From NCBI GenBank assembly GCA_030704615.1, contig CM060731.1:41416001-41480000 (forward strand): 64,000 nucleotides of DNA, in the 5' to 3' direction. Position numbers and translations under genes: made by a program. Source of the stretch: Takakia lepidozioides. Taxonomy: Eukaryota; Plantae; Bryophyta. The first letter of the stretch is position 1. Each line of letters begins with the position of its first letter. The notes below the pieces were generated by a model. It was given only the letters and a program-made list of their open reading frames with translations. It was not told the DNA's origin and did not search any database. Below, piece after piece: positions 1 to 29,617 of this stretch.

Positions 1-667
1 GTTTATGTGGAGTTCCATAAGTTCACTTCTGATGCATTGTTGGACGCAGCTTGAAACTTGCGGTTCCGAACCTGATAGATGTTGTGAGGGCCCGGGCTGT
101 CAGACCTTTGGGTGGAAGGGCTTGTAACCTTGCTGCAAGATGGCCTCGGTACATATGCAAATTCCGCACATGAATTTGTGATGGTGTTGTATCTCTAGCT
201 CCAAGCATTCCTTGGAAGAAAGACCGTTGCAATGGTTCCAGAAATTTCTTCCCACCAGGAAACTGGAACACCAGGTGCCCAGAACTCACAGCCATGAGTG
301 GCAGCAGGGTGACAACCGATTCGAAGCCACTTTTTGGGAATGCATTTGTTTGCATTTATCCTGAAGGTGTATGGCGGCAGCGTTACCCTTCGTCAATCTG
401 TCCATAGCAGACGATGCAAACTGATTTTGGGTAAGTGGATGACCAGACCCAGGTATGGGTATGATTTCATGTCCTCTCTCTTGCTGGTTGAAGAGGAATC
501 TCCGATCCACATGGCCATTGAAAACCATGATCTTGGTTTTGCTAAGATTGACCTGCAACCTGTAGTCTTCGGAGAAGTCTTCCAGGATGCCAAGGTGCCA
601 TTGTAGGAAGACAGGAGATTAATAGAACAACATCATCAGCATAGAGAAGTACTAATTGTGTTAGTCC
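1..667 (-). mobile_element. Degenerate non-LTR retrotransposon (family A, RTE/RTEX-like) RT fragment
   Basis: Minus-strand peptides LLYADDVVL and QVNLSKTKIMVFN are RT motifs; frameshifted; mirror copy of 15664-16329. Confidence 0.85.
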
Positions 668-1994
668 TCCATTGAGAACTTTTGTGTTGAAGTGAAACCA
701 TGAGGCCATTGGATGGCCTCTTAGGTATTTAGGGGTTAAGGGTGACAACATGCCACCAGGGCCACCGCTACGATCACTACAAAGGAGGTACCCCAAAGAA
801 CTTGCCCAAAAACAATCTGAAATCATAGGTGTAAGTGCACATCCTGAGAATGACTCCAGACAGAATTACAGTTTGCTTAGTATGAAATCGTGTGTGAAGT
901 CTACTTTCACATGCAGGCATCCAGTTTTGGACTGCTATGAAAACTTCTGGAATAGTTGAAAGAGAACCATTCCAGTGACGCCAGCTCTTAAAGCAACAAA
1001 GCAAAGACTGTAGATCACTTGTGGAAGGTGATAAGCATAAGTAACAGAGGTCCACCAGGCAGTTCACTGGGGTAGCCACTAGTCAAGCTCCAAAAACTCC
1101 AGGAAGAAGTCATCAGACAAAGCAGCCCAAGCAGCCAAAGCACATTAAACGTGTCCTTGGCACCTTAGCAAGGTCAAGTGCACACCAAAGGTAAACATTA
1201 ATCTACAGCAAGAAAGTCTAGATACCTCCCCCCTCCTATGTGGTGCTCTTTTCACTCTGTCCATGTCCTTCTCCTGACATCGACTACGAGTGATTCTCCT
1301 CCATACTCGTTTCTTTTCCTAAAAACATTTCTCTGTATACCAACGGGCTCATACGGATATCGTCATCTTCTCCACATATCTCACAAAGCACGACTCCAGC
1401 CACCTTCCAAGCAAAGCGAAGGCTTGGGGGAATCCATCCTGTTGGCATTCACGTATTCTGTAGTTATAAAGGCTATACACCACGTAATGAATGGCCGTTG
1501 CCCTCTGACAGATCGTCTCCGTCAATAATCGCCGGCCCTTCATCTCGATTGCTACGGCACAGAGCATCTTCACAACCCACATGGAATCTCATTATGTTTC
1601 GTCTGAACCAAACACCATCCAAAAACATCTTAATGGCTCCATTTTAGAGGATAGACATCAGATTCACTTCAGATCTGTCAAAGATTGGATGACCCGCAAA
1701 AACCATGTAGCATGACAAATGAGAACAGCAACAGAAGGCTAATTCCATACCACCCTCAGATGCGAAGCATGATATTGATCAAGACGGGTATGTTGGGAAG
1801 AATGGTTATGAATAACGAGGGAGACTGTTGAAACGCAAGACAGTACAAGGAGCAACCACTCGAGAAGATGGAGTGGGGGAAAACAAATAATGCGGGTAGT
1901 GCTGGTTGGGCTGGGCGCCACCCAGAACCATACCAGAGAGCCGAGATGGTCTACACTCCAGATTTCGCGACTTACATTACCATTTGTGTCAAGG
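1..1994. repeat. Left arm of a ~2-kb inverted repeat (partner 14328-16329); may extend beyond the window start
   Basis: Position 1 GTTTATGTGGAGTTCC is the reverse complement of ...GGAACTCCACATAAAC ending at 16329. Position 1994 pairs with 14328 (CCTTGACACAAATGG). The ORF track shows the same peptides on opposite strands (e.g. 334..606+ = 15725..15997-; 777..1079- ~ 15241..15543+). Confidence 0.97.
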
Positions 1995-2455
1995 TGTGGA
2001 GTTCTCTGGGCCATTTTAAATTCTGCTAACTGTGGGTAAATGCCAATGAGAAACACCATCAACATTTGCAGGTTGACTGTAACATGTTGTAAGAGCTTTG
2101 AAGTACCTGTCGGTACTTTGTATACATTTACTCGGTCAGGGTATATCTTCTCTCTTTGTCCAAAGATGTATCATTGGTATTGGCTGCCATCCACATCCTG
2201 TACTCCTTGAAATGCCGGTCCCATTCGTTGTAGTATTGATCAGATCCGGGACACTTGAACTTCATTTGCAGTATCACCTCCCCTGCTAACCACACATAAC
2301 ATGATGGAAAACCAGAATCAAGAACATTTAAAGGTGGAGGCTTACTTATGGGGCCAGCCTTCCATGACTCTAGTGATGCCATTCTGCTCACTTCTTTTCC
2401 CATTCACCTCCTTGTTTTCCAGCTGTGTGCAAATGGGTGTTGGGAGTATGATGTT
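668..2455 (-). pseudogene. Inverted 3' fragment of an RDR-gamma gene (penultimate exon ~2107-2282, last exon, 3' flank)
   Basis: GEVILQMKFKCPGSDQYYNEWDRHFKEYRMW matches the exon at 27462-27637. 2300-2450 is the reverse complement of RDR intron sequence at ~25990-26135. The last exon (FAWKVAG region) is frameshifted. Confidence 0.88.
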
Positions 2456-2459
2456 CGAT

Positions 2460-2760
2460 GTCTGCCCAAAGATTGGAGCTGCCTCTGCAAGGCTGTGAGA
2501 GATAGTGCAAGCATTTCATTGGTCCAGTTCATCAGGGTTAGGGTTGAATGCCCCTGCACCTCTTCTGTCTTCAATAGATTCAACCATATTAAAATCGCCT
2601 GCGATTATCCAACTATCTATAGATGGTTGATCCCACATTCTGGAATTAAGTACAGCCCAGAATTGAGTTCTCTCTGTCGCAGAGTTTGGAGCTTTGGCAT
2701 TCTGCTATGCTCTATCAAGGCTGTCTTGATGTCTTTCAACTACCAATAGTTACTTTGTAA
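2460..2760 (-). mobile_element. LINE AP-endonuclease remnant
   Basis: The reverse complement of ~2550-2610 reads IIAGDFNMVESIEDRRG, the GDFN motif of EEP/APE endonucleases; stop codons present. Confidence 0.55.
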
Positions 2761-4678
2761 GGTGCTCAAGAGTTCTCACCCACAGCAAATAGCCTTGCAG
2801 CACAAGGGAGATAAGATCCAAGCATTTTCTGTTCACTGTGGCAACCTAACCTACAGCAGAACTTTGGCGGAGGAGGGTGAACGCTTTGCTGAATCTTACC
2901 TGAGCATCAAAGGCTTTCCTGAGATTGGTGCTGGTTTTTTATGGGGACAGGTTGACATGATCCAGCTAGATACAAGTGATTATCTTCACCAATTAGGGAT
3001 CAGGTTGAGTAATTTTTAATCTATCATCAACTAGTGTGTGATCCCTAATTGCAGAGACATTATGGAAGCTCTCAACAGAGTTGGAGATGTTGTCAAAGCA
3101 ATGGAGTTTATTGGGCAGAGCTTTGGTAACTAAGGATTGTTTGCAATTCTCAACTGTTTAGGGCAATGGTCAACATGTAAACCTTTGATTATTTCTTTTT
3201 GTGAATTCCACCAATATTTTTAATCTTCCTTCGTCCGATAAACTCTCTTAGCTTCCCATTGATAGTGTAGAATTTCTTTTTTTCTTTGTTTCATGGTGCA
3301 GTGAACATTTTGAAACAAACTGATGATTTTCTATTGTGCAGGAAATCAGAACAGCCTCAAAAATCTCACTTCTGAAGTGAGCATTGGGGGATGGTTGGGC
3401 CCCACCTTTCTTCTTGTCCCGCCTTCCACTTTTTCCAGCTCTGTTGTGCAGACATGACATTCTACCGTCTATTTTTTTTCCACCTCTTTGAAAGTTGTTT
3501 GATGGATTCAAGTTGTAGCCCAATGGTAATGGACACACACCTCCTCGGAAGTGGTTGTGGATTCAATCCACCCATTTGTGTCACAAAGGTGTCCACCTTC
3601 GTGGCGGAAGGCAGTAACCCTTTAGGGTGAAAGAGACACCATAATTTATGCTTCCTTCGAGAGGCGTCAAATGTAAATATATATACAATTCGATGGATTC
3701 ATGTACACAGCAACAAGAGATTCAGTGCATTGAGTCAATTGAGCAGTAGTGCACTATCAGAGTACTTTGGACATAGAAAAAGACCAGGAGAGCATGTTCA
3801 GATACCCACGATTGTGGATATGTAATTTTTGTGAGGAGAGCTGGGGCGACTTGATTGCACCACTCTAGGCTCCTGGTGTGGGGCATTCCTCGATTTTCGG
3901 GCACCACCCTTGTGTGGGACCTTCCCTTGCATAAAGCATATGAAAGATTTCTTTCCACCTTCCGAATCTTTTCGACCATGCGCTTCTTTTCATTCTCTAC
4001 TCACTGCTAGCTTTTTCTGTGTGTCCTTCCAGCTTTTGTTGAAAAGAAGAAAGTCTGTCAGCGCCCCCAAGCGAGCCAATCTACTCTTGGGGAGCAGATA
4101 ATAACAAAGATAAAGATAAAGATAAAGTTTCTTTAACGTCTAGTGAATTTACTGAGCCTAACTGCTCAACAGACAGGCCATCGAGGGCCCAATGGACGGT
4201 CTGAAGGCACATGTTGAAGGATTGAACCCAGTATCACACAGGTTATGCATAGGCAAGGCACAAACACCCAACCACTGGGCAAGTGCTTTATGTTTAACGG
4301 GAAGGTCAATGAACATCCATGAGCGGATTGTTCATCCATATTTCTGGATGAACACTGGGAAGAGAGAGGGAGCGAGGCAGTCATGTTGGGTCCTTCTCCT
4401 CAATGCGATCCTGTGTCCTCGGTGCTACTTGCTTCTTCTTGCGTGCTCGCTGCCATGGACGCCCTGCATCGTCTCCTCACTATGCCGCACAACGCCATTC
4501 CAATGGCTGGGGATGCTTGTACATGCGGTATGAGGTCTTTCCCACATGTATTGATGTCTGTTGGGATTTAATATTCTGAAAGAGGTAGTGGGTTCTTGAG
4601 AGTGTGAAGTCATGGCATGGCATGCAGCTTGTGGTGGATGAAGGGTGGTGCTGCATCGGAAGCCGATCGAGGGTGAAC

Positions 4679-7600
4679 ATGAATTGGAGCGTACAGTGGA
4701 AGAGTCAAAATGTAGGATGGGCTACCTGGGCGGCGCTTGCGATTGTTGGTGTGTGCTATGTTCGCTGTGCCGTGCAGTGGCTGCCTCCTCTCTGGTCGAA
4801 ATCCAGTGCTGCATCTGCTCAAAGGTCCACGCGTGCTTCCAGCTCTCAGGGTCTACATGAACGGGCTACCGAGGATGACTGACTCAGTGGATATCAGCGC
4901 TGCATTTGCTCAAAGGTCCACGCTTGCTTCCAGCTCTCAGGATCCACATGAACGGGCTGCCGAGGATGACTCAGTGGATATCAGCTCTGCATCTGCTCAA
5001 AGGTCCACGCTTGCTTCCAGCTCTCAGGATCCACATGAATGGGCTGCCGAGGATGACTCAGTGGATATCAACCGCGGCAACCGAACCCCCAGAGGTAACG
5101 CTGTCAGCTTTCTTTCCTCCATTGAGAGAGCTACTCCGCTGGCCTCCTTGGGTGGGATTGACAATTAGTAGGGGTTATCAGACGATAGCCCACCGCCGCG
5201 AGCTTCTTTTGTGAAAATTCCGCACCTCCCAGAAGTGGTGGAAATTTGGCGGGACTTGATGAGCATAAGTCCTTCTCACCTTGCGCCAACTTGTTTGAAG
5301 TATGGGGAGTAGTTCGCACCAGACCCGATCTGAATGAAGAAGCACTGTTCTGGTGTTAAGTTTAGGAACTATCCATGGTAAACATGATGACATGATTAAA
5401 CTGACCCTTTTGCAAGTCAACCTCATCCTCTTAGGCATTCACTTTGTGCAGGAGAAGGTTCTGTTCTTCTATGTGCAGGTCCCGTGGAGAGGTATGATGT
5501 GTTTATCAGTCATAGAGGGCCGGACGTAAAGAAGACTTTCGTGGGCCACTTGGATGAGGCGCTGCGCACTGCTGGGTTTAAACCGTTCCTTGACAACAAA
5601 GATATTGGTTTGGGAGAGAGTACATGGGAGTCCATCGATCATGCTATCCGCAGTGCTCGAATCTGCATACCGGTGTTCAGTAAGGGTTATACGGAGTCCA
5701 AGTGGTGCCTGGATGAGCTATGCCTCATGTTGAAAAGCCGTGACGATGTCATCATTTTGCCCATCTTCTATGATGTGACACCCAGCGATGTACGGAGGCC
5801 AGATAATGGTTGTCTAAGGGCTGGGCTTGAGAAACTAAGACAGCGGCACACTGATGAAGAAGTGACAAAGTGGAAGGTGGCACTCACTGAAGCATCACAT
5901 CTCATGGGAGTGGAACTTGCAGATGGGTAGGGTGTGCAAAGTTTGCTTGCTTACTCCTGAGAACTCTTGGACTTTTATAAGCATTCATTACCCAATTGCT
6001 CCTACCTTGCTGTCTTCCTTTTATGACTCTACCCTTGAAGTTGTGGAGGCCTTTGGCAACAACGAGGGGCTGCATGGGGATATCGTTTTCTTTTCTTGTC
6101 GGTTTTAAGGATTTGTCATGCGTTCTTGTACCATCAGGTCATTGCACTTACTTTCTCTTGGAGAGAAAATGATGGTGGCCTGATACTTCCATACGTCTTC
6201 ATATGTTGCTTGGTCCATGGATGTGTGAGAGGCAGTCACCAAGTCTATATACTACAATTCTTAGTTCAGGGTTCATATGAATCCATGTTCATTGTTTTGT
6301 TATGGTAGCGACTTTTATACATGCTTCTTTTTTTCTTTTTCTTTTTCTTTTTCTATTACTTTTTTGTTGCTGTTTCTCTAATTGTTTTTTGTTTGCTCAT
6401 CTGAAAATTCCTCTATAATAACCTTAGATCAGATCTGCTCAACGCTTCTTATTTGGCTACCTTCAACTGTAAGTATGGATATATCTCCATATTCGTAAAG
6501 ATATTACAGCCCACTCTCTATTCCCTCATTCTTTTTATCTCCTAGGAAAGAATCGTGCATGCAAATGTAGAAGTGGGACTTTAATTATATGATTTAGGAT
6601 ATTTCATATAAATTTCATGATAGTTGTAATTGTTTGTTTTCTGACGAGATCTTTTAGTGGATCAACATCACTTTTAATGGCAAAGCCCCTTGGCACTATG
6701 AGCTTTGCATAAAAAGTTGTTTGTTGCACTCTTAGATCACAAAGTGTGGTGCTGATTGTGGTGTAGATGTTGGAGCTCCTTGGAAGCTTGCTTTTGACTT
6801 TGGATAACTGATTGAAAATTACTGATTCTTAGAAGCAATTCTTGATGAGATGCTTATGGGGCACTGCCTTATGTAGCCTTATCAATACCCTTGATGTGCA
6901 GGTCTGAAGTGAGTGTGGTGAAGAAAGCCGTGAAGAAAGTTGAAGAAGTTTTGAACATATTACCATTTGGAACTGCCAAACACCCTGTCGGGCTTAAGGA
7001 AAGAGCAAAAATTGTAATCCAAAGTCTGCAGCTTGGTCCAGGAGTTATGACATTTGGCATATGGGGCACAGGTGGAGTGGGCAAGACGACATTAGCAAAA
7101 GAAATATACAATAGTATTTTTACGGGTTTTGAGGCGGCTAGTTTTGTGGCGGACATCAAGGAGAGAGCTAAGCAGCCTGATGGGGTCACCAACATGCACA
7201 AGCAATTGCACGATGACATATGCAAAAATACAGATTTAAGGATGAATTGCGTATCTCGAGGAAAAGAAATATTGAAGGCGCGTCTACGGGGGAAGAAAGT
7301 TTTGATTGTGTTGGATGACGTTGATGATCAGTCTCAAATGGATGCTCTATTGTTCGATGCAGAGATGTTTGGAGAACTAGGAGATGGTAGTTGTTGTGTG
7401 ATGACATCACGTGACAAGCGATTGATGTTAAAACTTGGTGGTATTTACAATGTCGAGGTTCTTTGTGAGGAAGATTCGAAGAAGTTGTTCAATTTGCATG
7501 CCTTTTCGAATTCGAACCCAAAAGAACATTTTGAAAAGCTTGCAAATGATGTTGTGAAAGCTTGTGGTGGGCTTCCGTTAATTTTGGAGATAATTGGTGC

Positions 7601-10600
7601 ATCATTGAGTGGAGAGGAGAACAGAGGTATTTGGGAAGAAGTCCTTGAGAAGTTGAAGGAACGATCTTATCTCCCAGAGAACAAAAAACTATATGAGATC
7701 TTGCGAATAAGCTTTGATGCTCTCGAGGAAGATCATAAAAAAATGTTCCTTGACATTGCTTGTGTGCTCCTTGGGGAATCAAGTGAGACAGCTAAACGAG
7801 CCTGGAAAGGATCTAGGTGGTCTGCAGAGATTGGACTTCGAAACCTCATTGATAAGGCATTGGTGAAGTTGGACTATGAACGTAGATTCTTGATGCATGA
7901 TCATCTACGAGACATGGGTCGACACATTGTGATGACAGAGCATGGTTTGCTTGAGAAGTGGAGTGGCTTTTGGGTACCCCAAGACGAAGCAACAGACCTG
8001 ACTGAAAATGAGGTGATTTCATAAAAATCGAACTGTCTATTCCATTGTTGTTAAAGTTTGTTCGAAGCAAGTAAAGACTCAAATATTTGATTGATGGGTG
8101 AAGAGGGAGCGAACTGATTGTTCCAAGTGTTAACACATTTTGAGAGCTGCACTACTTCAAGGCTTGACTGTAAATCAACAACTTGATGGACATTCATTGT
8201 ACAAGAGAAACACAAAATGTAATGCACGTTCAATTCTTTTCATAGATGCCATATGATTGGAATTTCTATTTGAAGATGTCAAGAATGTATGTTGTGGTGT
8301 TGTCCAGATCAAATCCAAGGTCCAAGTGCTTTCACTAAATTTGGAGAATGTGGACAGAGATTCCAAAAGATTGGCTATGGAGAGCTTTCATACCATGAAA
8401 AAGCTAAGAATACTTTTCTTACATGATTTCACATGGGAATCTTCCATTACTTTTCCAAAGAGTTTGACATGGTTTCGCATGTGTGATTTGCGATCCGACT
8501 ACTTGCCGCACGGGCTTTCTTTTGTGAATAATTTGCGCGTGCTTCATGTGCGAGACAGTACCATCCAAAAGTTGTGGGAGGAAGATCATAATAATCAGGT
8601 ACATGTTACTTAAATTGAATATCATATATTGCATTCAATGTAGACTTTAGATTGTATGCTTCTTTGAAATGTTGTGTTGTAAAAATTGAGTTGGGATCAA
8701 TATCTATTATTTTGAGTAAAACTCGGTGCGGATAGTAATAAATTTTGGTGATATTGTCTTGAAGGGTCCAACACACACTTTGGCTCATATGAAAAAAGTG
8801 GAGGAGATAGAACTATCTAGGTGTTCGAGACTTGAAATGCTTCCACATTCGATTGGAGAGCTAACGATGCTTCAAAAGATGATTGTCAAGCATTGTACAA
8901 CACTCAAAGGCGTGCCAACTTCCATTGTTAAGCTTACAATGTTAAAAGTCCTCAACTTCGAGGGTTGTTTCAATATACAAGCCCTCCCTGATTGTTTGGG
9001 GTTGTTGAAAGAGCTCGAAGAGTTGGACCTCTCATCATGCACCCGCTTGGAGTACTTGCCTGAGTTCAGCGAAGGAGTGGTTCATCTCCAAAAACTGCTT
9101 CTCATGAATTGTACAGCACTCAAAGGCCTGCCAGACTCCATTGGTAATCTTGCAATGTTAAAATACCTCATCCTTGAGGGTTGTTCTAACATACAAGTCG
9201 TGCCTGATTGTTTGGGGCAGTTAAAAGAGCTCTTACTGTTGGACCTTTCTTCTTGTACGAGCTTGGAGAGGTTGCCTGATTCCATCGGAGCATTGATTCA
9301 TCTCCAAAAATTGATCCTCAAGAATTGTACAACACTCAAAGGCCTCCCAGACTCCATTGGTAATCTTGCAAAGTTAAAAATCCTCTACCTTCGGGGTTGT
9401 TCCAACATACAAGTCGTGCCTGATTGTTTGGGGCAGTTGAAAGAGCTCGAAGAGTTGGACCTCTCTTCTTGTACGAGCTTGGAGAGGTTGCCTGATTCCA
9501 TCGGAGCATTGATTCATCTCCAAAAATTGTGGCTCATCAATTGTACAGCACTCAAAGGCCTGCCAGACTCCATTGGTAATCTTGCAAAGTTAAAATTCCT
9601 CTACCTTCGGGGTTGTTCCAACATACAAGTCGTGCCTGATTGTTTGGGGCAGTTGAAAGAGCTCGAAGAGTTGGACCTCTCTTCTTGTACGAGCTTGGAG
9701 AGGTTGCCTGATTCCATCGGAGCATTGATTCATCTCCAAAAATTGTGGCTCAAGAATTGTACAGCACTCAAAAACCTACCAGACTCCATTGGTAATCTTG
9801 CAAAGTTAAAAATCCTCAACCTTGAGGGTTGTTCCTGCAACATACAAGCCGTGCTTGATTGTTTGGGGCTGTTGAAAGAGCTCGAAGAGTTGGACCTCTC
9901 TTCTCGTACGAGCTTGGAGAGGTTGCCTGATTCCATCGGAGCATTGATTCATCTCCAAAAATTGTGGCTCATCAATTGTACAGCACTCAAAGGCCTGCCA
10001 GACTCCATTGGTAATCTTGCAAAGTTAAAATTCCTCTACCTTCGGGGTTGTTCCAACATACAAGTCGTGCCTGATTGTTTGGGGCAGTTGAAAGAGCTCG
10101 AACTGTTGGACCTTTCTTCTTGTACGAGCTTGGAGAGGTTGCCTGATTCCATCGGAGCATTGATTCATCTCCAAAAATTGATCCTCAGCAATTGTACAGC
10201 ACTCAAAGGCCTGCCAGACTCCATTGATAATCTTGCAATGTTAAAATACCTCAACCTTGTGGGTTGTTCTAACATACAAGTCGTGCCTGATTGTTTGGGG
10301 CAGTTGAAAGAGCTCGAAGAGTTGGACCTCTCTTCTTGTACGAGCTTGGAGAGGTTGCCTGATTCCATCGGAGCATTGATTCATCTCCAAAAATTGTGGC
10401 TCATCAATTGTACAGCACTCAAAGGCCTGCCAGACTCCATTGGTAATCTTGCAAAGTTAAAATTCCTCTACCTTCAGGGTTGTTCCAACATACAAGTCGT
10501 GCCTGATTGTTTGGGGCAGTTGAAAGAGCTCGAAGAGTTGGACCTCTCTTCTTGTACGAGCTTGGAGAGGTTGCCTGATTCCATCGGAGCATTGATTCAT

Positions 10601-12958
10601 CTCCAAAAATTGTGGCTCATCAATTGTACAGCACTCAAAGGCCTGCCAGACTCCATTGGTAATCTTGCAAAGTTAAAATTCCTCTACCTTCGGGGTTGTT
10701 CCAACATACAAGTCGTGCCTGATTGTTTGGGGCAGTTGAAAGAGCTCGAAGAGTTGGTCCTCTCTTCTTGTACGAGCTTGGAGAGGTTGCCTGATTCCAT
10801 CGGAGCATTGATTCATCTCCAAAAATTGTGGCTCATCAATTGTACAGCACTCAAAGGCCTGCCAGACTCCATTGGTAATCTTGCAAAGTTAAAATTCCTC
10901 TACCTTCGGGGTTGTTCCAACATACAAGTCGTGCCTGATTGTTTGGGGCAGTTGAAAGAGCTCGAAGAGTTGGACCTCTCTTCTTGTACGAGCTTGGAGA
11001 GGTTGCCTGATTCCATCGGAGCATTGATTCATCTCCAAAAATTGTGGCTCAATAATTGTACAGCACTCAAAGGCCTGCCAGACTCCATTGGTAATCTTGC
11101 AAAGTTAAAAATCCTCTACCTTGAGGGTTGTTCCTGCAACATACAAGCCGTGCTTGATTGTTTGGGGCAGTTGAAAGAGCTCGAAAAGTTGGGCCTCTCT
11201 TCTTGTACGAGCTTGGAGAGGTTGCCTGATTCCATCGGAGCATTGATTCATCTCCAAAATTTGTGGCTCAAGAATTGTACAGCACTCAAAGGCCTGCCAG
11301 ACTCCATTGGTAATCTTGCAATGTTAAAATACCTCATCCTTCAGGGTTGTTCTAACATACAAGTCGTGCCTAATTGTTTGGGGCTGTTGAAAGATCTCGA
11401 AGTGTTGGACATCTCTTCTTGTACGAGCTTGGAGAGGTTGCCCGATTCCATCGGAGCATTGATTCATCTCCAAAAATTGTGCCTCAAGAATTGTACAGCA
11501 CTCAAAGGCCTGCCAGACTCCATTGATAATCTTGCAATGTTAAAATACCTCAACCTTGAGGGTTGTTCTAACATACAAGTCGTGCCTGATTGTTTGGGGC
11601 AGTTGAAAGAGCTCGAGCTGTTGGACCTTTCTTCTTGTACGAGCTTGGAGAGGTTGCCTGATTCCATCGGAGCATTGATTCATCTCCAAAAATTGTGGCT
11701 CATCAATTGTACAGCACTCAAAGGCCTGCCAGACTCCATTGGTAATCTTGCAAAGTTAAAAATCCTCAGCCTCGAGGGTTGTCCCAACATACAAGTCGTG
11801 CCTAATTGTTTGGGGCTGTTGAAAGATCTCGAAGTGTTGGACATCTCTTCTTGTACGAGCTTGGAGAGGTTGCCTGATTCCATCGGAGCATTGATTCATC
11901 TCCAAAAATTGTGGCTCAAGAATTGTACAGCACTCAAAGGCCTGCCAGACTCCATTGGTAAACTTGCAAAGTTAAAAATACTCAACCTTGAGGGTTGTTC
12001 CTGCAACATACAAGCCGTGCTTGATTGTTTGGGGCAGTTGAAAGAGCTCGAAGAGTTGGTCCTCTCTTCTTGTACGAGCTTGGAGAGGTTGCCTGATTCC
12101 ATCGGAGCATTGATTCATCTCCAAAAATTGTGGCTCATCAATTGTACAGCACTCAAAGGCCTGCCAGACTCCATTGGTAATCTTGCAAAGTTAAAATTCC
12201 TCTACCTTCGGGGTTGTTCCAACATACAAGTCGTGCCTGATTGTTTGGGGCAGTTGAAAGAGCTCGAAGAGTTGGACCTCTCTTCTTGTACGAGCTTGGA
12301 GAGGTTGCCTGATTCCATCGGAGCATTGATTCATCTCCAAAAATTGTGGCTCATCAATTGTACAGCATTCAAAGGCCTGCCAGACTCCATTGGTAATCTT
12401 GCAAAGTTAAAATTCCTCTACCTTCCGGGTTGTTCCAACATACAAGTCGTGCCTAATTGTTTGGGGCAGTTGAAAGAGCTCGAACTGTTGGACATCTCTT
12501 CTTGTACGAGCTTGGAGAGGTTGCCTGATTCCATCGGAGCATTGATTCATCTCCAAAATTTGTGGGTCAATAATTGTACAGCACTCAAAGGTCTGCCAGA
12601 CTCCATTAGTAATCTTGCAAAATTAAAAGTCCTCCACCTGCAGGGTTGTTCCAACATACAAGTCCTGCCTCATTGTTTGGGGCTGTTGAAAGAGCTTGAA
12701 GAGTTGGACCTCTCTTCTTGTACGAGCTTGGAGAGCTTGCCTGATTCCATCGCAGCATTGATTCATCTCCAAAATTTGTGGCTCAATAATTGTACAGCAC
12801 TCAAAGGCCTGCCAGACTCCATTGATAATCTTGCAAAGTTAAAAATCCTCAGCCTCGAGGGTTGTCCCAACATACAAGTCGTGCCTGATTGTTTGGGGCT
12901 ATTGAAAGAGCTCTGGAAGAGTTGGACTTCTCTTCTTGTACGAGCTTGGAGAGATTGA
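4679..12958 (+). CDS. TIR-NB-ARC-LRR (TNL) immune receptor with predicted N-terminal membrane anchor; exons 4679-5094, 5479-5926, 6902-8012, 8308-8598, 8765-12958; this allele may be disrupted by a 4-bp duplication in exon 1
   Basis: GT-AG junctions have matching phases (1,2,0,0). TIR motifs YDVFISHRGPD and SKWCLDEL; P-loop GTGGVGKTT; kinase-2 VLIVLDDVDD; GLPL; MHD (FLMHDHLRDMG); 1410-aa LRR ORF. Confidence 0.93.
4808..5070 (+). repeat. Three tandem 87-bp (29-aa) Ser/acidic repeats in NLR exon 1
   Basis: GCAT(C/T)TGCTCAAAGGTCCACGC starts at 4811, 4902 and 4989. Copy 1 is 4 bp longer because GACT is duplicated at ~4877-4884. Confidence 0.95.
5479..5926 (+). CDS. TIR domain exon of the TNL
   Basis: ORF 5484..5930 contains YDVFISHRGPDVKKTFV, IPVFSKGYTESKWCLDEL (catalytic Glu present) and LPIFYDV. 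Confidence 0.96.
6902..8012 (+). CDS. NB-ARC exon of the TNL
   Basis: ORF 6891..8024 has intact P-loop, kinase-2, RNBS-B (GSCCVMTSRD), GLPL, RNBS-D (MFLDIAC) and MHD motifs. Confidence 0.97.
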
Positions 12959-14327
12959 ATGATTCCGTCGGAGCATTGATTCATCTCCAAAAATTGTGGC
13001 TCAATAATTGTACAACACTCAAAGGCCTCCCAGACTCCATTGGTAATCTTGCAAATTAAAAGTCCTCAACCTTGAGGGTTGTTCCAACATACAAGTCATA
13101 CCTCATTGTTTGGGGCTACTGAAATAGCTTGAAATGTTGGACCTTTCTTCTTGTACGAGCTTGGAGATGTTGCCTGATTCCATCGGAACATTGATTCATC
13201 TCCAAAATTTGTGGCCCAAGAATTGTACAGCACTCAAAGGCCTGCCAAACTCCATTGACAATCTTGCAAAGTTAAAAGGCCTCAGCCTTGAGGGTTGTTC
13301 CTGCAACATACAAGCCGTGCTTCATTGTTTGGGGCTGTGGAAAGAGCTCGAAGAGTTAGATCTCTCTTCTTGCACGAGCTTGGAGAGCTTGCCTGAATCC
13401 ATCGGAACATTGATTCATCTTCAACGACTGCGGCTCATGAATTGTACAACACTCAAAGGCATGCCAGATTCCATTTGTAATCTTGTAAAGTTAAAAGTCC
13501 TCATTCTTGAGGGTTGTTCCAACATACAAGTCGTGCCTCATTGTTTGGGGCTGTTGAAATAACTCGAAGTGTTGGACCTCTCTTCTTGTACGAGCTTGGA
13601 GAGGTTGCCTGATTCCATCGGAGCATTGATTCATCTCCAAAAATTGTGCCTCAATAATTGTACAGCACTCAAAGGCCTGCCAAACTCCATTGGTAATCTT
13701 GCAAAGTTAAAAGTCCTTAGCCTTGAGGTTGTTCCTGCAACATACAAACCGTGCTCGATTGTTTGGGGCTATTGAAAGAGCTCGAAGAGTTGGACTTAGA
13801 GACTTTACGAGCTTGGATAGGTTCCGTGATTCCATTGGAGCATTGATTTATCTCCAAAAATTGTGGCTCAAGAATTGTAGAGCACTCAAAAACCTACCAG
13901 ACTCCATTGGTATTCTTGCAAAGTTAAAAGTCCTCAACCTTGAGGGTTGTTCCAACATACAAGTAGTGCCTCATTGTTTGGGGCTGTGGAAAGAGTTCGA
14001 AGAGTTGGACCTCTCTTCTTGTACGAGCTTGGAGAGCTTGCCCGATTCCATCGGAGCCTTGAATCATCTCCAAAAATTGTGGCTCAAGAATTGTACAGCA
14101 CTCAAAGGCATGCCCGACTCCATTGGTAATCTTGCAAAGTTTAAAAGTCCTCAACCTTGAGGGTTGTTCCTGCAACGTACAAGCAGTGCTTGATTATTTG
14201 GGGTTGTTGAAAGAGCTCGAAGTGTGGGATCTCTCTTCTTGCACCAGCTTGGAGTTGCCTGAATCCATCGGAACATTGATTCATCTCGAACAATTGTGGC
14301 TCATTTATTGTACAACACTCAAAGGCT
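8870..14327 (+). repeat. Tandem array of ~25 units of 216 bp (some 219 bp), each encoding three 24-aa LRRs
   Basis: Unit consensus LIHLQKLWLINCTALKGLPDSIGN-LAKLKFLYLRGCSNIQVVPDCLGQ-LKELEELDLSSCTSLERLPDSIGA. About 19 units lie in ORF 8726..12958 and 6-7 degenerate units follow. Confidence 0.97.
12959..14327 (+). pseudogene. Out-of-frame, degenerate LRR units downstream of the NLR reading frame
   Basis: +2 frameshift at ~12914 (GAGCTCTGGAAGAG vs GAGCTCGAAGAG), in-frame stops (AAATAG ~13125, AAATAA ~13560) and further indels; truncated at 14327 by the inverted-repeat arm. Confidence 0.9.
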
Positions 14328-15663
14328 CCTTGACACAAATGGTAATGTAAGTCGCGAAATCTGGAGTGTAGACCATCTCGGCTCTCTGGTATGGTTCTGG
14401 GTGGCGCCCAGCCCAACCAGCACTACCCGCATTATTTGTTTTCCCCCACTCCATCTTCTCGAGTGGTTGCTCCTTGTACTGTCTTGCGTTTCAACAGTCT
14501 CCCTCGTTATTCATAACCATTCTTCCCAACATACCCGTCTTGATCAATATCATGCTTCGCATCTGAGGGTGGTATGGAATTAGCCTTCTGTTGCTGTTCT
14601 CATTTGTCATGCTACATGGTTTTTGCGGGTCATCCAATCTTTGACAGATCTGAAGTGAATCTGATGTCTATCCTCTAAAATGGAGCCATTAAGATGTTTT
14701 TGGATGGTGTTTGGTTCAGACGAAACATAATGAGATTCCATGTGGGTTGTGAAGATGCTCTGTGCCGTAGCAATCGAGATGAAGGGCCGGCGATTATTGA
14801 CGGAGACGATCTGTCAGAGGCAACGGCCATTCATTACGTGGTGTATAGCCTTTATAACTACAGAATACGTGAATGCCAACAGGATGGATTCCCCCAAGCC
14901 TTCGCTTTGCTTGGAAGGTGGCTGGAGTCGTGCTTTGTGAGATATGTGGAGAAGATGACGATATCCGTATGAGCCCGTTGGTATACAGAGAAATGTTTTT
15001 AGGAAAAGAACGAGTATGGAGGAGAATCACTCGTAGTCGATGTCAGGAGAAGGACATGGACAGAGTGAAAAGAGCACCACATAGGAGGGGGGAGGTATCT
15101 AGACTTTCTTGCTGTAGATTAATGTTTACCTTTGGTGTGCACTTGACCTTGCTAAGGTGCCAAGGACACGTTTAATGTGCTTTGGCTGCTTGGGCTGCTT
15201 TGTCTGATGACTTCTTCCTGGAGTTTTTGGAGCTTGACTAGTGGCTACCCCAGTGAACTGCCTGGTGGACCTCTGTTACTTATGCTTATCACCTTCCACA
15301 AGTGATCTGCAGTCTTTGCTTTGTTGCTTTAAGAGCTGGCGTCACTGGAATGGTTCTCTTTCAACTATTCCAGAAGCTTTCATAGCAGTCCAAAACTGGA
15401 TGCCTGCATGTGAAAGTAGACTTCACACACGATTTCATACTAAGCAAACTGTAATTCTGTCTGGAGTCATTCTCAGGATGTGCACTTACACCTATGATTT
15501 CAGATTGTTTTTGGGCAAGTTCTTTGGGGTACCTCCTTTGTAGTGATCGTAGCGGTGGCCCTTGTTCTGGCATGTTGTCACCCTTTCCATATTAACCCCT
15601 AAATACCTAAGAGGCCATCCAATGGCCTCATGGTTTCACTTCAACACAAAAGTTCTCAATGGA
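14328..15663 (+). pseudogene. Duplicated 3' fragment of RDR-gamma (part of last intron, last exon, 3' flank)
   Basis: Homologous to ~27755-29214; peptide SLRFAWKVAGVVLCEICGEDDDIRMSPLVYREMFLG; frameshifted. Confidence 0.88.
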
Positions 15664-16329
15664 GGACTAACACAATTAGTACTTCTCTATGCTGATGATG
15701 TTGTTCTATTAATCTCCTGTCTTCCTACAATGGCACCTTGGCATCCTGGAAGACTTCTCCGAAGACTACAGGTTGCAGGTCAATCTTAGCAAAACCAAGA
15801 TCATGGTTTTCAATGGCCATGTGGATCGGAGATTCCTCTTCAACCAGCAAGAGAGAGGACATGAAATCATACCCATACCTGGGTCTGGTCATCCACTTAC
15901 CCAAAATCAGTTTGCATCGTCTGCTATGGACAGATTGACGAAGGGTAACGCTGCCACCATACACCTTCAGGATAAATGCAAACAAATGCATTCCCAAAAA
16001 GTGGCTTCGAATCGGTTGTCACCCTGCTGCCACTCATGGCTGTGAGTTCTGGGCACCTGGTGTTCCAGTTTCCTGGTGGGAAGAAATTTCTGGAACCATT
16101 GCAACGGTCTTTCTTCCAAGGAATGCTTGGAGCTAGAGATACAACACCATCACAAATTCATGTGCGGAATTTGCATATGTACCGAGGCCATCTTGCAGCA
16201 AGGTTACAAGCCCTTCCACCCAAAGGTCTGACAGCCCGGGCCTCACAACATCTATCAGGTTCGGAACCGCAAGTTTCAAGCTGCGTCCAACAATGCATCA
16301 GAAGTGAACTTATGGAACTCCACATAAAC
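14328..16329. repeat. Right arm of the inverted repeat (partner 1-1994)
   Basis: Near-identical reverse complement of 1-1994 with a few indels (e.g. 15560-15595 vs 735-765). Confidence 0.97.
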
Positions 16330-16975
16330 TGTACTGGGTGACATTCTTGGTTTTCCATTAAGATAGAATCTTGCGGCCCAATTTCCCGTCTGAAGCTCTA
16401 TCTCCCATTCTTCTGAGGGCATTTGGGAGATTCAGGGTCGGTTCCCTTGCCTGCAGATACACTGATAGGTGGGAAAATCTGTAACTGGAGGACCCCCTAT
16501 GCCCTGCTTGCGTTGCGAACAACTGGGAAATGAAAGTGCAGAACATTTCTTCTTTCACTGCCCTTTCTACTATGGGATCCGCGGTAGATTCAACTGTATA
16601 TTCGAAGACACCCAATCTCTCATGGAGATCTTCCATTACGAGGATCAGAAATTCTTGGCATCTTACCTCCATGAAGTGTCGACTCTTAGACAATCCTTTG
16701 AGCAATAGTTGCTTTGGGCTGCTTGTGGCCCCTCTCTCTTCCTTGTTTCTTGTTCCTTGTCTGTTCCAAGGTAAGTCATACTACCGGTGTCAGCCCCTGA
16801 CAAAGGTAGTTTCTGTCCCTTTGTGTCCCGCTCAAACTGAGCATGGGGACAACCGCCACAAGGCTACGGCAACAACGTCGTATGATCTCTTCCTTGTTTC
16901 TTGCTTCCTTCTGTCCCGGAAGCTCTTTGAGCTTTCTGCGGATGTTATAGAGTACCATTTCATTTCATTTTTCAT
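15664..16975 (+). mobile_element. 5'-truncated LINE family A (RTE/RTEX-like) with C-terminal CCHC knuckle and (CATTT)n tail
   Basis: YADDVVL RT motif; CLRCEQ..EHFFFHCP knuckle; ends GTTATAGAGTACCATTTCATTTCATTT. Confidence 0.87.
16753..16885 (+). mobile_element. 3'-terminal fragment of LINE family B nested in the family A 3' UTR
   Basis: Matches the 3' UTR of the 60128-61758 element; flanked by the 18-bp duplication TCTCTTCCTTGTTTCTTG (16735-16752 / 16886-16903). Confidence 0.85.
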
Positions 16976-19900
16976 TGGTTCGTTCTTTCCTGAAGACTCC
17001 AGGGCATTCCCCTCCTAGAGTTGAAGCCTGTTTGTCTCTTTTCTTGTTGTCCACGTACAAAGCTTACAAGCTTTGAACTGGTCGAGGTGTGCAGGCTTCA
17101 GTTGGCTTTGTCTCAAACAGTACAGATACCGTTGGACTTTCCAAGATTAAAGGTGGAGATTATAGATGACGAGATATGCGGGTACAGCGGCTTAACACTG
17201 GCAGTGCTTTGGAACCCAGGGGGTGGGGAGGTATAGTGACCCTTTGCATTTGCATCTTGAGAGTGTACAGAATTGATTCAGTTATCGCCCCCGCATTGAA
17301 GTCTGGATATGCACATCACTACGGTACATCTCCAACCCTCTCCACTAAACTTGGCTGCAAAGCATCCCCTGCCCCTGTTCCCCTTGCAGCCTTCTCCTGA
17401 GGCATTCTTGCTTTCATCTTGGACAAAGGTGTAGACTAGCCACTTTGGAAGGTCGCTGAAGGTCCCAGAGCAATCTGAGGACAAGTGCTGTTGTTGTTGT
17501 TTCTGGATGTATGAGTGAGCAAGCTTCTAAGGTGAGTATGTTCTTTGCAGGATGAGAGTGGGGAAGCTGTCAAAGATGGTAATAAGATTCACACAGATGG
17601 TTGCGGTTATATCTCACGAAATTTGGCCATCCTCTGCCCTAAAAGGATCTTCAAGGGGTGCAAGCAGAGGCAATCTCATCCTAAGAAAGCAGAAGAGGTG
17701 GACACCAAAACTATGAAGTGGTTAACTGGAATGTGGGTGTAACTTGTGAAGTAGTGAACCTGCTGAATGCTAATAATTTCGCCAGATGGAAGACTAATGG
17801 CAGCTAATCTTGTGTCTGGTGCATGACCACTATCAAAAAAGGAATATCCACTCATGATGCAAGTACGCCTGTTTGAGAAAGGAAATGTTTGGAAAGGGGT
17901 TCTCCTTGTCAACTGCAAGGTATGATTCTATACTAGTCACTGTCTGCTCTCATTTATAGTATAGAGAGGACTTGAACTCCTGCAGAGTTCGCTGATGTGT
18001 ACCCTTGAGCTTTGATAGACCTCCTGGAGTTGATGATGGACATATAAACTTACCAGCCTGAATATATGTACTTTCAATCATGCTGCAGTTACATGGGATT
18101 GAGTACTAACACTGTAGCTGATTTGATGTCTCATCTGTGGCTCTGATTGCACAGACAGTTGCACTGTAGAGTCTATACACTATAAACAAACTCTATAATG
18201 TCCACAGGAAGCTCAAATAGTTTCTGAGACAAGAACTTGAATAAAGGAACAAACTGCTACAAAGTTGTCTAACTGGCTCTCAATGATGGAATGATTCCGA
18301 GCTGTTATAACCTGTGCATGACTTGACGCAATCTACTCTCCTATCACATCATGCGTGGGTATGACATGAGAAAATTAGAAATATTGCACTTTCATTAGGT
18401 TGACAAAACATGCAGTCCTACTTCAGGGATGAAGGGTATCCTGTGTCCTTAGGTGGCTGAGATTTGGCTATTTGATGCTTTCATGGTTGTGCCTTGTATA
18501 CAAGCCGGTTCAAACAACTTGTCTGAAAGCTTAGTTATCAACTGACTTGTGCCTGTCCATTGGTTCACTTACATAGAGTTCTACGCTCCCATTACCGGAG
18601 CAAATATTTGCACATACTTCAACAATGAATGTTTTTTTCCAATTTGGCTAACAGTTTCAGAGCAATATTCACACTTGAGTGATTTTCTTATGCCTTTTTT
18701 GCAGTGGTTGCACTTGTAATATCCTTTCCCATCTCTGTTTACAACATCTCCTATGTATGAGCTTGTCACCTGAATGTCTGACCATATCTTATTTATTAAC
18801 TTAGGCCTTGAAGGGAATTCTACCTACAGCCCCTTCACCTCAGTACCATGCATATGAATATTTAAGAGTAAAATCGGAGTTCTTTTTCAAGTTTCTGACC
18901 TTGGTTGGTGATTTCTGTGGTGTACACTGAGACAAGCAGCTCCCTGATGACACAATCCAAGTGCGCCCGTCAATGCGTAAGGTGAAAAGGGATGAAAAAC
19001 TCAAGTCCCCTACGTTCAATTCTCTGGAGTTGTGCAACACCAGGTTTGTCATCTTGGTGAAGAATCTTGTTTAAAAATTTGGTGCTTGTGAACTTCGTAC
19101 TTACATTCTAAGCTCCATGATTGGAGAAATGATCTTTTGGGAACTGCAGGTACTCCTGTAACTTGCTGAAAATTTCTGTCTATACCACATTCCATCAGTC
19201 TGGCAGTGTTGTAAGCTTGTCTCTTGACTAAATAGGCACATTTACTGACCTCAGATTCTACCAAAGCCTGCCTGACTGATTCTTGTTTTATGTAATTGTC
19301 ACTTTTGAATTCTTTTACTTGCTTCCAACAAAACTAGTTGATAGGTCACTCGAATTAATAGTCAAGTTTAGCCATCCATTGCACAGAGACATCTTGGAAG
19401 GGCAATTAGAAGTCAAAAGCCACTCGGACAGTCAGGTAGGGCAGGGTGCCCTGTGTGTTGATGAAGTGCTTGGGATGGTGTATTAGTTTGGAAAGAAGCT
19501 CATACATCCATGTTATTTTGTGACTGTTTGTGTGCTCGGCTTGAATGGGTAGTCGCAAGCCACCAAATGCGAAGTTGTTTCAGCATCTTGTGCTGTTGCT
19601 GAAAATTGGAGGAGTTTCAGAGGAAGTTCTTATTCAATTTGTCGCAAATGGGATTGAGGAGGTCAAGACATATTTTCGCAGTCGTTATGCAGCAAGGAGA
19701 GGTTCGTTAGCCATACTTTGGTGAACAAGCTGGTCTTGAGGTTATTGCAGTTGAGGTCAGTTTTGGGAAGTGTGGCTCCTTGTTTCTGAGTGTTTCTGTG
19801 TCCAAATTCCTTCAATTTTGAATGGGTTGCCTCAGACAATTTGCGAACCACATCAGGCCCTATCCAGTTTGACTCAAACTGTGCTGGGAAATTCTCAGTC

Positions 19901-20793
19901 CTTGTGGTCTGTATTTTTAGCCTATGGTAGGATACTGTCCCTCGGCTTGGCTTCCTGACAAACCTGCTACATTATCATTGTACACTCTTGGTCCTCAGCT
20001 CAATAAGTATGTATTCATTGTAGTTGATGTGTCTTCTACTGTTGTTGATAAGCAATAGCCAATTAGTTCTCCTTGACATCCTGAACTTGTGCCATGCTTG
20101 AAACTCAGACTTGTGACATTCTGATACCACATGTTCTCTTTTCTGATTGTATCTTCATGCCTTGTTGGTTGTCCTGTTGTTGTGGGGCATATTGTGCTTG
20201 CCGTTTTGCGACCCCTGCTTTGTGCATGGAAGATGGCCAGCCAATAAGCATCTGTTGTGGTGTATTTTTCACAAACCAAGGAAGGTTATGTAGGTTATGT
20301 TTCTAATTTATGTTGATCGCCATTTATAAGTCATTCAGTCTCCCGCCTTACATTGTTTCTAGATTCTGCTTTCAGATTGTATACAACATTTGGTATCTGT
20401 CTTGTAGCTTTGGAGAGCTGCCCGGAGGACCATGATACTGCTGACCTGGCTTTACGAATGCTGTCTGCTGGACTGCTATTGGATGAACATTATCTACGGA
20501 AAATACTATGGGATATACTCAAAGGACGCCTCCAAGAGTTTAGCAAGGCACGGGTGCCTGTGCCCCAATGCAAATATCTCATGGGCTGTGCTGATCCAAG
20601 CGGCCTTTTGGAGAGAAACCAGGTCGCCATCATTCTGTGAGTTGAAGTTATAATTATAGCCACACAGACCCTTTGGTCATCCTGTTCTCCCTCTCATCCT
20701 GTTTGTTTTTTATTCCCATGTTGAACACTAGGCTTGAACTGCCTTTCTCTGTGGATGTCTTCGTTTCATCCTCTTTCTTTCTGAAAAACTAGG

Positions 20794-27217: not shown

Positions 27218-29617
27218 CTCCTCCACCGGTCGTTATAAGGTATCGTTTTATTGATCCACAGTAGTAGCATTGGACTAACTTCTCTACTTCACTAAATGTC
27301 TGTTGCTTTACAGCTGTATAACTTGTCAGCATGACGCCTTTTACTAGATCAGCTACTACTCACTGCGGACGCTAGTGGATGAACCAATGTTCAGTGGAAG
27401 GCTAGATAATTATAGAGGATGGCTAGATAATTAATATGGCATGTTATGTGTGTGTTAGCAGGGGAGATAATACTGGAAATGAAGTTTATGTGTCCCGGAT
27501 TTGGGCAGTACTGCAACGAATGGGAGCAGCATTTCAAGGAGTACAGGATGTGGATGGCAGCGAATATCAATGATACATCTTTGGACAAAGAGAGAAGAAA
27601 TACCCAGTCCGAGTCAATGTATACAAAGTACCGACAGGTACTTCAAAGCTCTTACAGCATGTTACAGTCAACCTGCAAATGATGATGGTGTTTCTCAATG
27701 ACTTAGCATATGCCCACAGTTAGCAGAATTATAAATTGCCCAGAGAACTCCACACCTTGATCTCACAAATGCTAATGTTCAACGCGAAAATCTGGAGTGT
27801 AGACCATCTTGGCTCTCTGGTATGGTTCTGGGTGGCACCCAACCAGCACTACCAGCATTATTTGTTTTCCCACTCCACCTTCACGAGTTGTTGCTCCTTG
27901 TACAATCTTGCGTTTCATAACCATTCTTCCCAACATACCAGTCTAGATCAATATCATGCTTCGCTATGTGCATGGAATTAGCTTTCTGTTGCTGTTCTTG
28001 TTTGTCATGCTACACGGTTTTTGCGGTTCATCCAATCTTGGACAGACCTGAAGTGAATCTGATTTCTATCCTCTAAAACGGAGCCATTAAGATGTTTTTG
28101 GAAGGTGTTTGGTCCAGACTAAACATAATGAGATTCCATGTGGGTTGTGAAGTTGCTCTATGCCGGAGCACTCAAGATGAAGGGCCGGCAATTATTGACT
28201 GAGACAATCTTTCAGAGGGCTACGGCCATTCATAGCGTGGTGTATAGCCATTATAACTACAAAATACGTGAAAGACCAGATCCTATGTCAAGAGGATGGT
28301 TCCCCCCAAGCCTTTGCTTTGCTTGGAAGGTGGCTGGAATCGTGCTTTGTGAGATGTGTGGAGAAGATGATGATATCCGTATAAGCCCGTTGGTATACAG
28401 AGAAATGTTTCTAGGAAAGGAAACGAGTCTGGAGGGGAATTACTCGTAGTCGATGTCAGGATAAGGACAATAGAGTGAAAAGAACACCATAGGAGGGGGA
28501 AAGTATCTAGACTTTCTTGCAGTAAATTATGTTTACCTTTGGTGTGCACTTGACCAATGACCACAGTCCAAATGTTTCACTTCCCCTCTGATCCAGAAAA
28601 CTTCCAGGTTGATTGGCAATACTGAGTGCTGAGTACTTGCAGAGGTGCAGTATGTGCACCATAATGTAATTTATTCAGGATTGGTACTAAGGTGCCAATG
28701 ACATTTTCTCAATGTTTAATGTGCTTTGGGCTGCTTGGGCTGCTTTGTCTGATGACTTTTTCGTGGGGTTTTTGGAGCTTGACTAGTGAACTGCCTGGTG
28801 GACCTCTGTTATTTACATTTATCACCTTCCACAAGTGATTTGTAGTCTTTGCTTTGTTGTGTGTTGCATATCCTGCAGCTTTAAGAGTTGGAGTCAATGG
28901 GATGGTTCTCTTTCAACTGTTCCAAAAGTTTTCATAGCAGTCCAAAACTGGATGCCTGCATGTGAAAGTAGACTTCACACACGATTTCATACTAAGAAAA
29001 CTGTAATTCTGTCTGGAGTCATTCTCAGGATGTGCACATACACCTATGCTTTCAGATTGTTTTTGGGCAAGTTCTTTGGGGTACCTCCTTTGTAGTGATC
29101 TTAGGAGTGGCCCTTGTCTTCTGGCATGTTGCACCCTTTCCATATTAACCCCTAAACACCTAAGAGGCCATCCAATGGCCTCATGGTTTCACTTCAACAC
29201 AAAGTTCTCAATGGATACTCAACCGCATCCAAAGCTGCTATATGCAGCATCTGCATGAAGAGCTGCTCTACCAGAGATATCTACTCCGATGCAAACGGTG
29301 TGGCAGGTGAGAGAGATGAGCATGAGAAGGGTAAAGTGGATTGGGGTTTCTTGCATGGAATGGGGTGGCCCATTGTATCATTGTTGTTAGAAAACAATGG
29401 GTCGGTGAAAACCCCATCTGAAGGGGATTACATGGATGGAATCAATCAAAAATATGTGAGGACCTTCTTGACTTGATTGAAAACATTGGGACCATTTCGA
29501 TTCTCAAACAACAAAACCAATCTTTTCTTAAAATAAGAAAGGTGGCAAAGTGCTGAAAATGCTCCCCTCCATACTATCAGGACAACAGAGCGTGAGTGCG
29601 TGAGGTGGTGCAGGACG

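Follow-up and report, generated by a model that had tools for sequence, protein, structure and literature searches.

A TIR-NB-ARC-LRR Gene of Takakia lepidozioides with a Large Homogenised Array of Three-LRR Units

Structure and transcription of the TNL gene

The present study describes a gene in a 64,000-nucleotide stretch of Takakia lepidozioides DNA (GenBank assembly GCA_030704615.1, contig CM060731.1, positions 41,416,001 to 41,480,000 of the forward strand; hereafter the window, to which all coordinates refer). Judged from its sequence, the locus is a TIR-NB-ARC-LRR (TNL) gene of a bryophyte. Its largest exon consists mostly of 216-bp units that are nearly identical to one another and differ mainly at a few codons in each LRR. 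A preliminary description of this DNA, made without database searches, had identified a plant TIR-type NLR (a receptor that combines nucleotide binding with leucine-rich repeats), and matches to the Pfam families TIR, NB-ARC, and WHD_ROQ1 and to several LRR families confirmed this identity. The gene model, which was searched exon by exon and not as a joined protein, comprises the following parts.

5479..5926, plus strand: TIR exon (Pfam TIR, E=2.7e-31, match 5484-5930), with a cag acceptor before 5479 and a donor GT at 5927
6902..8012, plus strand: NB-ARC and winged-helix exon (Pfam NB-ARC, 1.3e-29; WHD_ROQ1, 5.8e-14; matches 6891-8024)
8308..8598, plus strand: linker and first-LRR exon (weak LRR_3 match in the open reading frame [ORF] 8257-8613; 3' end taken from spliced RNA contigs)
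8599..8764, plus strand: GT..AG intron, confirmed by RNA
8765..12958, plus strand: large LRR exon of 1397 codons with its stop at 12956-12958 (ORF list; several Pfam LRR families)

The TIR exon carries an SKWCLDEL motif with the catalytic-type Glu. Since this exon has no ATG of its own, at least one further exon is expected upstream. It ends in phase 2 with two bases over, and the NB-ARC exon supplies the completing base at 6902. The P-loop (GTGGVGKTT), LIVLDDVDD, GGLPL, and MHD motifs are readable in the NB-ARC exon, which ends at 8012 in phase 0. Two in-frame AG acceptors are candidates for the linker exon and would place its start at 8284 or 8308.

Contigs of four public runs were placed on 8451-14450. 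All are short k-mer contigs, and their differences of ~1-2% from the window indicate another genotype. A joint at 8596>8763 (cut +2) was present in contigs of the RNA runs X5 and X6, which come from two studies, and the DNA run X1 was unspliced at this position. The splice into the array exon keeps the frame, joining EEDHNNQ to GPTHTLAHMKK. Since this in-frame joint was found in RNA contigs, we concluded that transcription takes place and that splicing includes the array exon.

A Pfam search of ORFs of at least 100 amino acids downstream of the array for a post-LRR domain (C-JID) yielded no match; many seed-plant TNLs, though not all, have this domain. The former C terminus of the TNL may have been lost, with the array now ending against a repeat element. 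No Rfam matches were found in 1-20000. Just upstream of the TIR exon, 4804-5070 holds 3.0 copies of an 87-bp unit with 92% matches, which lie in an open frame and encode a Ser/Asp-rich 29-residue repeat. The missing 5' exon of the NLR gene may include this repeat.

Organization and homogeneity of the tandem array

Tandem Repeats Finder reported a single array at 8886-14326, with a period of 216, 25.1 copies, and 90% matches. A 216-bp unit spans three LRRs, each 24 residues long and of the pattern LxxLxLxxCxxLxxLPDSIGxLxx. A 40-nt anchor was found 25 times. Its spacing is 216 bp and becomes 219 bp where a unit carries an additional CTG; spacings of 218, 215, and 217 bp also occurred in the last six units. 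The features of the array are as follows.

8886..14327, plus strand: tandem array of 25 units of 216 bp and the first 28 nt of a 26th unit (Tandem Repeats Finder, anchor scan, unit alignment)
9102..12782, plus strand: homogenised core, units 2-18, mosaic and hypervariable at LRR positions 3/5/7 (unit alignment and structure model)
9835-9837, 11134-11136, 12001-12003, 13301-13303, 13735-13737, 14170-14172, plus strand: CTG insertions producing the GCSCN variant
12914..12915, plus strand: 2-bp TG insertion in unit 19, which shifts the frame to the stop at 12956-12958 (unit alignment, indel list)
12959..14327, plus strand: decayed tail, from the end of unit 19 to unit 25, in which units 20-25 show 86-92% identity to the consensus

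The whole array corresponds to 75 LRRs. The frame opened at 8726 covers 19.6 units, or ~58 LRRs, up to the stop at 12956-12958, which agrees with the ~19 in-frame units and ~58 LRRs of a 216-bp unit given previously. The earlier delimitation of the array as 8870-14327 was correct in that a giant array lies there; however, its last six units (12959-14327) are out of frame and filled with stops.

Units 2-18 showed 93-100% identity to the core consensus and a mean pairwise DNA identity of 94.1% (range 86-100). Units 4, 10, and 16 are identical to one another, and there are 15 distinct sequences among the 17 core units. Identity to the core consensus was 80% for unit 1 and 86-92% for units 19-25. 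This combination of an alike centre with diverged edge units fits homogenisation by unequal exchange. Of the 1410 residues of the frame, 1283 belong to windows that share at least 85% identity with another unit. The array had been described as homogenised even at third codon positions. The homogeneity of the core held, whereas the third-position identity was overstated: variable sites in units 2-18 are distributed over codon positions 1/2/3 as 16/15/17, and the proportion of synonymous differences (pS) is 0.042.

The 3-bp CTG insertion affects the middle LRR, which reads GCSCN rather than GCSN, in units 5, 11, 15, 21, 23, and 25. A higher-order period was sought in the array and was not found, with mean identity remaining flat (0.93-0.95) at unit offsets 1-11. 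No unit-like sequence was found elsewhere within the 64-kb window.

Variation at LRR positions 3/5/7

Variation among units 2-18 is concentrated at few sites. Nine of the 72 codons, namely positions 3/5/7 of LxxLxLxx, account for 54% of the amino-acid entropy (permutation p<1e-5). The Nei-Gojobori ratio of nonsynonymous to synonymous change (dN/dS) reaches 7.7 at these positions, compared with 0.69 in the remaining codons. Replacement and silent variants number 23:1 at the nine codons against 21:12 at the other 63 (Fisher p=0.004). With 24 of 57 variants in these nine codons, the density of variants is five-fold higher there (binomial p=2e-8). The preliminary description had placed the variation mainly at the x positions of LxxLxLxxC, a proposal that evenly spread or mostly synonymous variation would have contradicted; the results obtained revealed the contrary of such a distribution. 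All of the codon series that it had named were present: TTC/TAC/ATC/GTC; TAC/AAC/ATC/AGC/CAC; CGG/GAG/GTG/CAG/CCG; TGG/ATC/TGC; and GAC/GTC/GGC.

In the canonical LRR fold, strand residues 3 and 5 face the concave surface. An AlphaFold model of units 4-8, for which a small alignment of array segments and homologues served as input, had a mean predicted local distance difference test (pLDDT) value of 94.9 and a predicted template modelling score of 0.91. In this model, a three-residue strand recurs every 24 residues over positions 3-5 of each LRR, and position 7 follows directly. The predicted structure is therefore consistent with the earlier assignment of the x positions to the concave strand. 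The best match among solved structures was the regular bacterial LRR horseshoe 4u08, with a template modelling score of 0.90. In the GCSCN variant, local confidence is lowered (pLDDT ~71) and the adjacent helix is lengthened.

Mosaic arrangement of unit variants

Among 25 parsimony-informative sites, 142 of 300 pairs failed the four-gamete test. Neighbouring sites were more compatible than shuffled ones, and none of 2000 permutations reached the observed value (p<0.0005). Sub-unit variants that had been listed previously also recurred: DNLAMLKYLNL in units 7 and 13, LKILSLEGCP in units 14 and 19, and DLEVLDISS in units 12 and 14, in addition to GCSCN. The incompatibility of sites and the recurrence of variants in new combinations fit repeated exchange between units, and the mosaic character of the array accords with the earlier proposal. 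Recurrent mutation at the hypervariable codons adds to the incompatibilities; however, it does not explain the effect of distance.

In one RNA contig of X5 (window 13657), a consensus-type unit directly follows the pre-array sequence 8869-8890, whereas a second X5 contig matches the diverged unit 1 of the window. Two array starts thus occur in one sample, and this hints at a second allele or paralog with a different start, or at a mixed sample.

The decayed tail and the flanking inverted repeat

Downstream of the TG insertion in unit 19, further frame-breaking indels occur in units 20-25 at about 13055, 13728, 13805, and 14140, and all three frames contain stops. A contig of X1 (DNA of the other genotype, record 7) matches 13768-13912 with zero differences, including the 1-bp deletion at 13805 in unit 23. 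Because this independent contig carries the deletion, the decay of the tail is real and is not an assembly error. RNA-run contigs also map on the tail, which is probably transcribed as an untranslated part of the mRNA.

At 14327, 28 nt into the 26th unit, the array breaks off at a copy of a dispersed repeat. An inverted repeat of ~2 kb encloses the whole NLR gene.

14328..16339, plus strand: right arm of the inverted repeat, starting exactly at the array end, with 99.1% identity to the reverse complement of 1-1994
1..1994, minus strand: left arm of the inverted repeat, running off the window start

The two arms differ by 4 mismatches and 5 gaps. A third copy of the repeat, at 27764-29215 with 86-89% identity, begins within 7 nt of the same end. 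Since the terminus of this copy coincides with those of the arms, we infer that both arms derive from a dispersed repeat and that its end abuts the array. From their sequences, the coinciding inner ends of the three copies look like the terminus of a transposable element. The inner junction of the left arm (1994/1995) is present in X1, in a contig with a loose end at 14328. No Pfam matches were found in the ORFs of the inverted-repeat arms. An ORF at 542-826 on the minus strand contains a YADD-like motif and has no Pfam match.

Elsewhere in the window, a PPR/E-motif gene at 50904-52416 (ORF 52076-52891) has repeats that register as a tandem array of 5 copies of a 302-bp unit at 74% identity. 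These PPR repeats are those of an ordinary diverged repeat protein and provide a contrast to the homogenised LRR array.

Similar arrays in other plant TNLs

The best protein matches to the LRRs had 41-47% identity and came from Sphagnum, Populus, Pinus, and Cryptomeria, and the best NB-ARC matches were angiosperm TNLs at 37-45% identity. Neither a close homologue nor an annotation of the gene itself was found in protein collections, and two exact-pattern metagenome scans with conserved stretches of the unit gave no match. Self-similarity was measured in 266 retrieved proteins, which do not constitute a systematic survey. Many plant TNLs among them carry near-identical tandem LRRs, including the following.

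P0009 (SUGI_0840960), Cryptomeria japonica: 25 x 24 residues, with variation only at x positions
P0002, Populus alba: ~29 x 24 residues
P0262 (SNC1-like), Camelina: 13 x 48 residues
P0016 (N-like), Ipomoea nil: 11 x 71 residues
P0094, Ceratopteris: 10 x 93 residues
P0001 and P0008, Sphagnum: blocks of 145 residues
P0006, Sphagnum: TNL with an LPDSIG-type repeat array

At the DNA level, the Populus alba locus (L001:3412-5653; GCA_005239225.2, CM100074.1) contains 31.2 copies of 72 bp with 87% identity in an open frame. Its units are single LRRs of the LPDSIG type, arranged in blocks of almost identical units that differ at x positions; the TNL is annotated as 'LOW QUALITY PROTEIN'.

These unstudied plant TNLs resemble the Takakia gene in combining TIR-NB-ARC with tandem near-identical 24-residue LRRs of the LPDSIG type, or blocks of two, three, or six LRRs, that vary mainly at x positions. 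They differ from it in having shorter arrays. The window array is the largest among the 266 proteins, with 1283 self-similar residues in frame against 600-830 in other plant TNLs. Since the identity of these TNLs to the Takakia gene is only 35-47%, the arrays arose independently. The statement in the preliminary description that angiosperm NLR LRRs are fewer and mutually diverged therefore requires qualification: the moss array is the largest of the set, but near-identical arrays also occur in Populus, Cryptomeria, Camelina, Ipomoea, and others.

Discussion

Duplicated LRR blocks are present in classical resistance genes, such as Arabidopsis RPP5/SNC1, flax M, and tomato Cf-2/Cf-5, and intragenic unequal exchange is the accepted mechanism for them. 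Melon Vat/Pm-w, another plant immune receptor with tandem, highly conserved LRR blocks, has 1-5 blocks of 65 residues (R65aa), the number of which goes with specificity (PMC10807702). The Takakia gene is from a bryophyte and has 25 blocks (75 LRRs, 58 in frame).

The preliminary description had likened the gene to the fungal HNWD genes and the LRR-ROCO genes of Ectocarpus, a comparison that is apt for the way of working of these genes (PMC4986451, PMC3341825). Fungal NLRs contain internally conserved WD, ANK, or TPR repeats that undergo concerted evolution and diversifying selection (PMC4986451). Similar to the moss gene, the NWD/HNWD genes (HET-E/D/R) are STAND/NLR genes with C-terminal repeats more than 85% identical that are shuffled within the gene, and in each repeat only a few surface positions undergo replacement (Paoletti 2007; PMC4986451). 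Dyrka 2014 delimited such genes by repeat identity above 85% across 100 residues or more (PMC4986451); repeats of this kind are present in the moss array, as is the focusing of replacements on the predicted interaction surface described in the same study. In contrast to the fungal genes, the moss repeats are LRRs rather than WD40, ANK, or TPR, and the nucleotide-binding oligomerisation domain is a plant-type NB-ARC with an N-terminal TIR. Polymorphism in repeat number and exchange between paralogs have been demonstrated in Podospora, whereas the moss gene is known from one assembly. The LRR-ROCO genes also have many near-identical LRR modules, with diversifying selection and evidence of reshuffling (PMC3341825). 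However, each repeat is a separate phase-0 exon in Ectocarpus (PMC3341825), whereas all in-frame units of the moss gene lie in one continuous exon (uninterrupted ORF 8765-12958). The signalling domains of LRR-ROCO are also unlike those of the moss TNL.

We consider it probable that the LRR domain of this TNL evolves as a three-LRR module is amplified in tandem, homogenised, and reshuffled, and that replacements are retained at ligand-facing positions. The domain would have expanded by the tandem duplication of the 216-bp module within one uninterrupted exon. The central units have most likely been kept alike by concerted evolution, through gene conversion and unequal crossing-over between units. 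These exchanges would also bring a limited number of amino-acid variants into new orders, almost only at the solvent-exposed strand positions 3/5/7, where selection by ligands may act. The likely product is a very long solenoid, the concave surface of which would be a patchwork of few alternative residues per repeat. If the gene functions in immunity, recombination could change the length and residue pattern of this solenoid over generations, a germline mode of diversification as in the fungal NWD/HNWD genes. In the present allele, the 2-bp insertion ends the frame in unit 19, the six distal units are decayed and untranslated, and a copy of the dispersed repeat cuts off the end of the array.

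Several findings weigh against this explanation, and some of them would also be expected of a decaying pseudogene, in which a satellite-like recent amplification took place in a dead or dying NLR and the surface pattern was inherited from a few ancestral units. The frame stops prematurely within the array after the 2-bp insertion, four more frame-breaking indels follow in units 20-25, and the 3' end is truncated by the repeat copy, with no post-LRR domain found in the downstream ORFs. Purifying selection on the scaffold codons is weak, as their dN/dS of 0.69 is not significantly below 1 (21 vs 12, neutral expectation 0.765, p=0.10), and a recently amplified array could remain open without selection. 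The allele may thus be on its way to becoming a pseudogene. However, 1397 codons are open and 19 units contain no frameshift, whereas the following 1.4 kb has five events that break the frame. The motifs of the TIR domain and the P-loop, GLPL, and MHD motifs are also intact, and RNA from two studies shows in-frame splicing. Multi-allelic series of single-step replacements at positions 3/5/7, in which the third base is constant, also point to recent replacement changes. We regard a pseudogene as unlikely.

Unit number and order are those of the assembly, and a shorter array could have been mis-assembled in its unit count, its order, or the inverted-repeat junction. The runs provide short k-mer contigs of a genotype ~1-2% diverged, three units are identical, and the junction at 14327/14328 was unseen in the independent runs, the X1 contig there continuing into left-flank context. 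This junction may be specific to the assembled individual. An artefact is nevertheless very unlikely, given the 15 distinct sequences among 17 core units in a non-periodic mosaic and the match of independent contigs to the array entry, to several unit-specific stretches, and to the frameshifted unit 23. The arms of the inverted repeat also differ from each other and are, therefore, not one sequence used twice. The preliminary description had gone further and spoken of a rapidly re-programmable receptor. A programmed or somatic system, in which the array is rearranged within an individual during clonal growth or sporogenesis, as proposed for Ectocarpus, appears highly improbable. The two array starts coexisting in X5 are a hint in this direction, and no other evidence supporting rapid re-programming was obtained; however, two alleles or two paralogs would account for them just as well, and so would a mixed sample. 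Beside the array, neither recombination signal sequences nor flanking cassettes nor genes for dedicated enzymes were seen, and ordinary meiotic or mitotic unequal exchange suffices for the pattern.

Module amplification with homogenisation and reshuffling may extend beyond this gene. Intragenic recombination in homogenised arrays could be a regular source of new specificities in bryophyte and other plant TNLs, with unit number and order differing between individuals of one species, convergent with HNWD; we consider this broader proposal rather unlikely at present. In a haploid, clonally growing moss, such recombination might even be mitotic and occur within one individual.

NLR diversity in plants is usually attributed to duplicated genes, to point mutations in LRRs that have diverged, and to integrated decoy domains. 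The Takakia gene illustrates another route clearly and at an unusually large scale. In this route, best known from fungi, a homogenised array carries a small alphabet of variants at ligand-facing positions and is reordered. The moss array is a new and extreme case of an already known pattern, since arrays of a similar type are known or annotated in other receptors. A full-text literature search found no paper that treats homogenised LRR arrays in plants as a class. Engineered binders might also be built on long, regular LRR solenoids, in which the variable positions are defined, and such scaffolds are of interest for this reason. The same design occurs in a smaller form in poplar, a conifer, a fern, Brassicaceae, Ipomoea, and Sphagnum, and its recurrence across land-plant TNLs may be a more useful lead than the single gene. 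Homogenised LRR arrays may represent a general, overlooked mode of NLR evolution.

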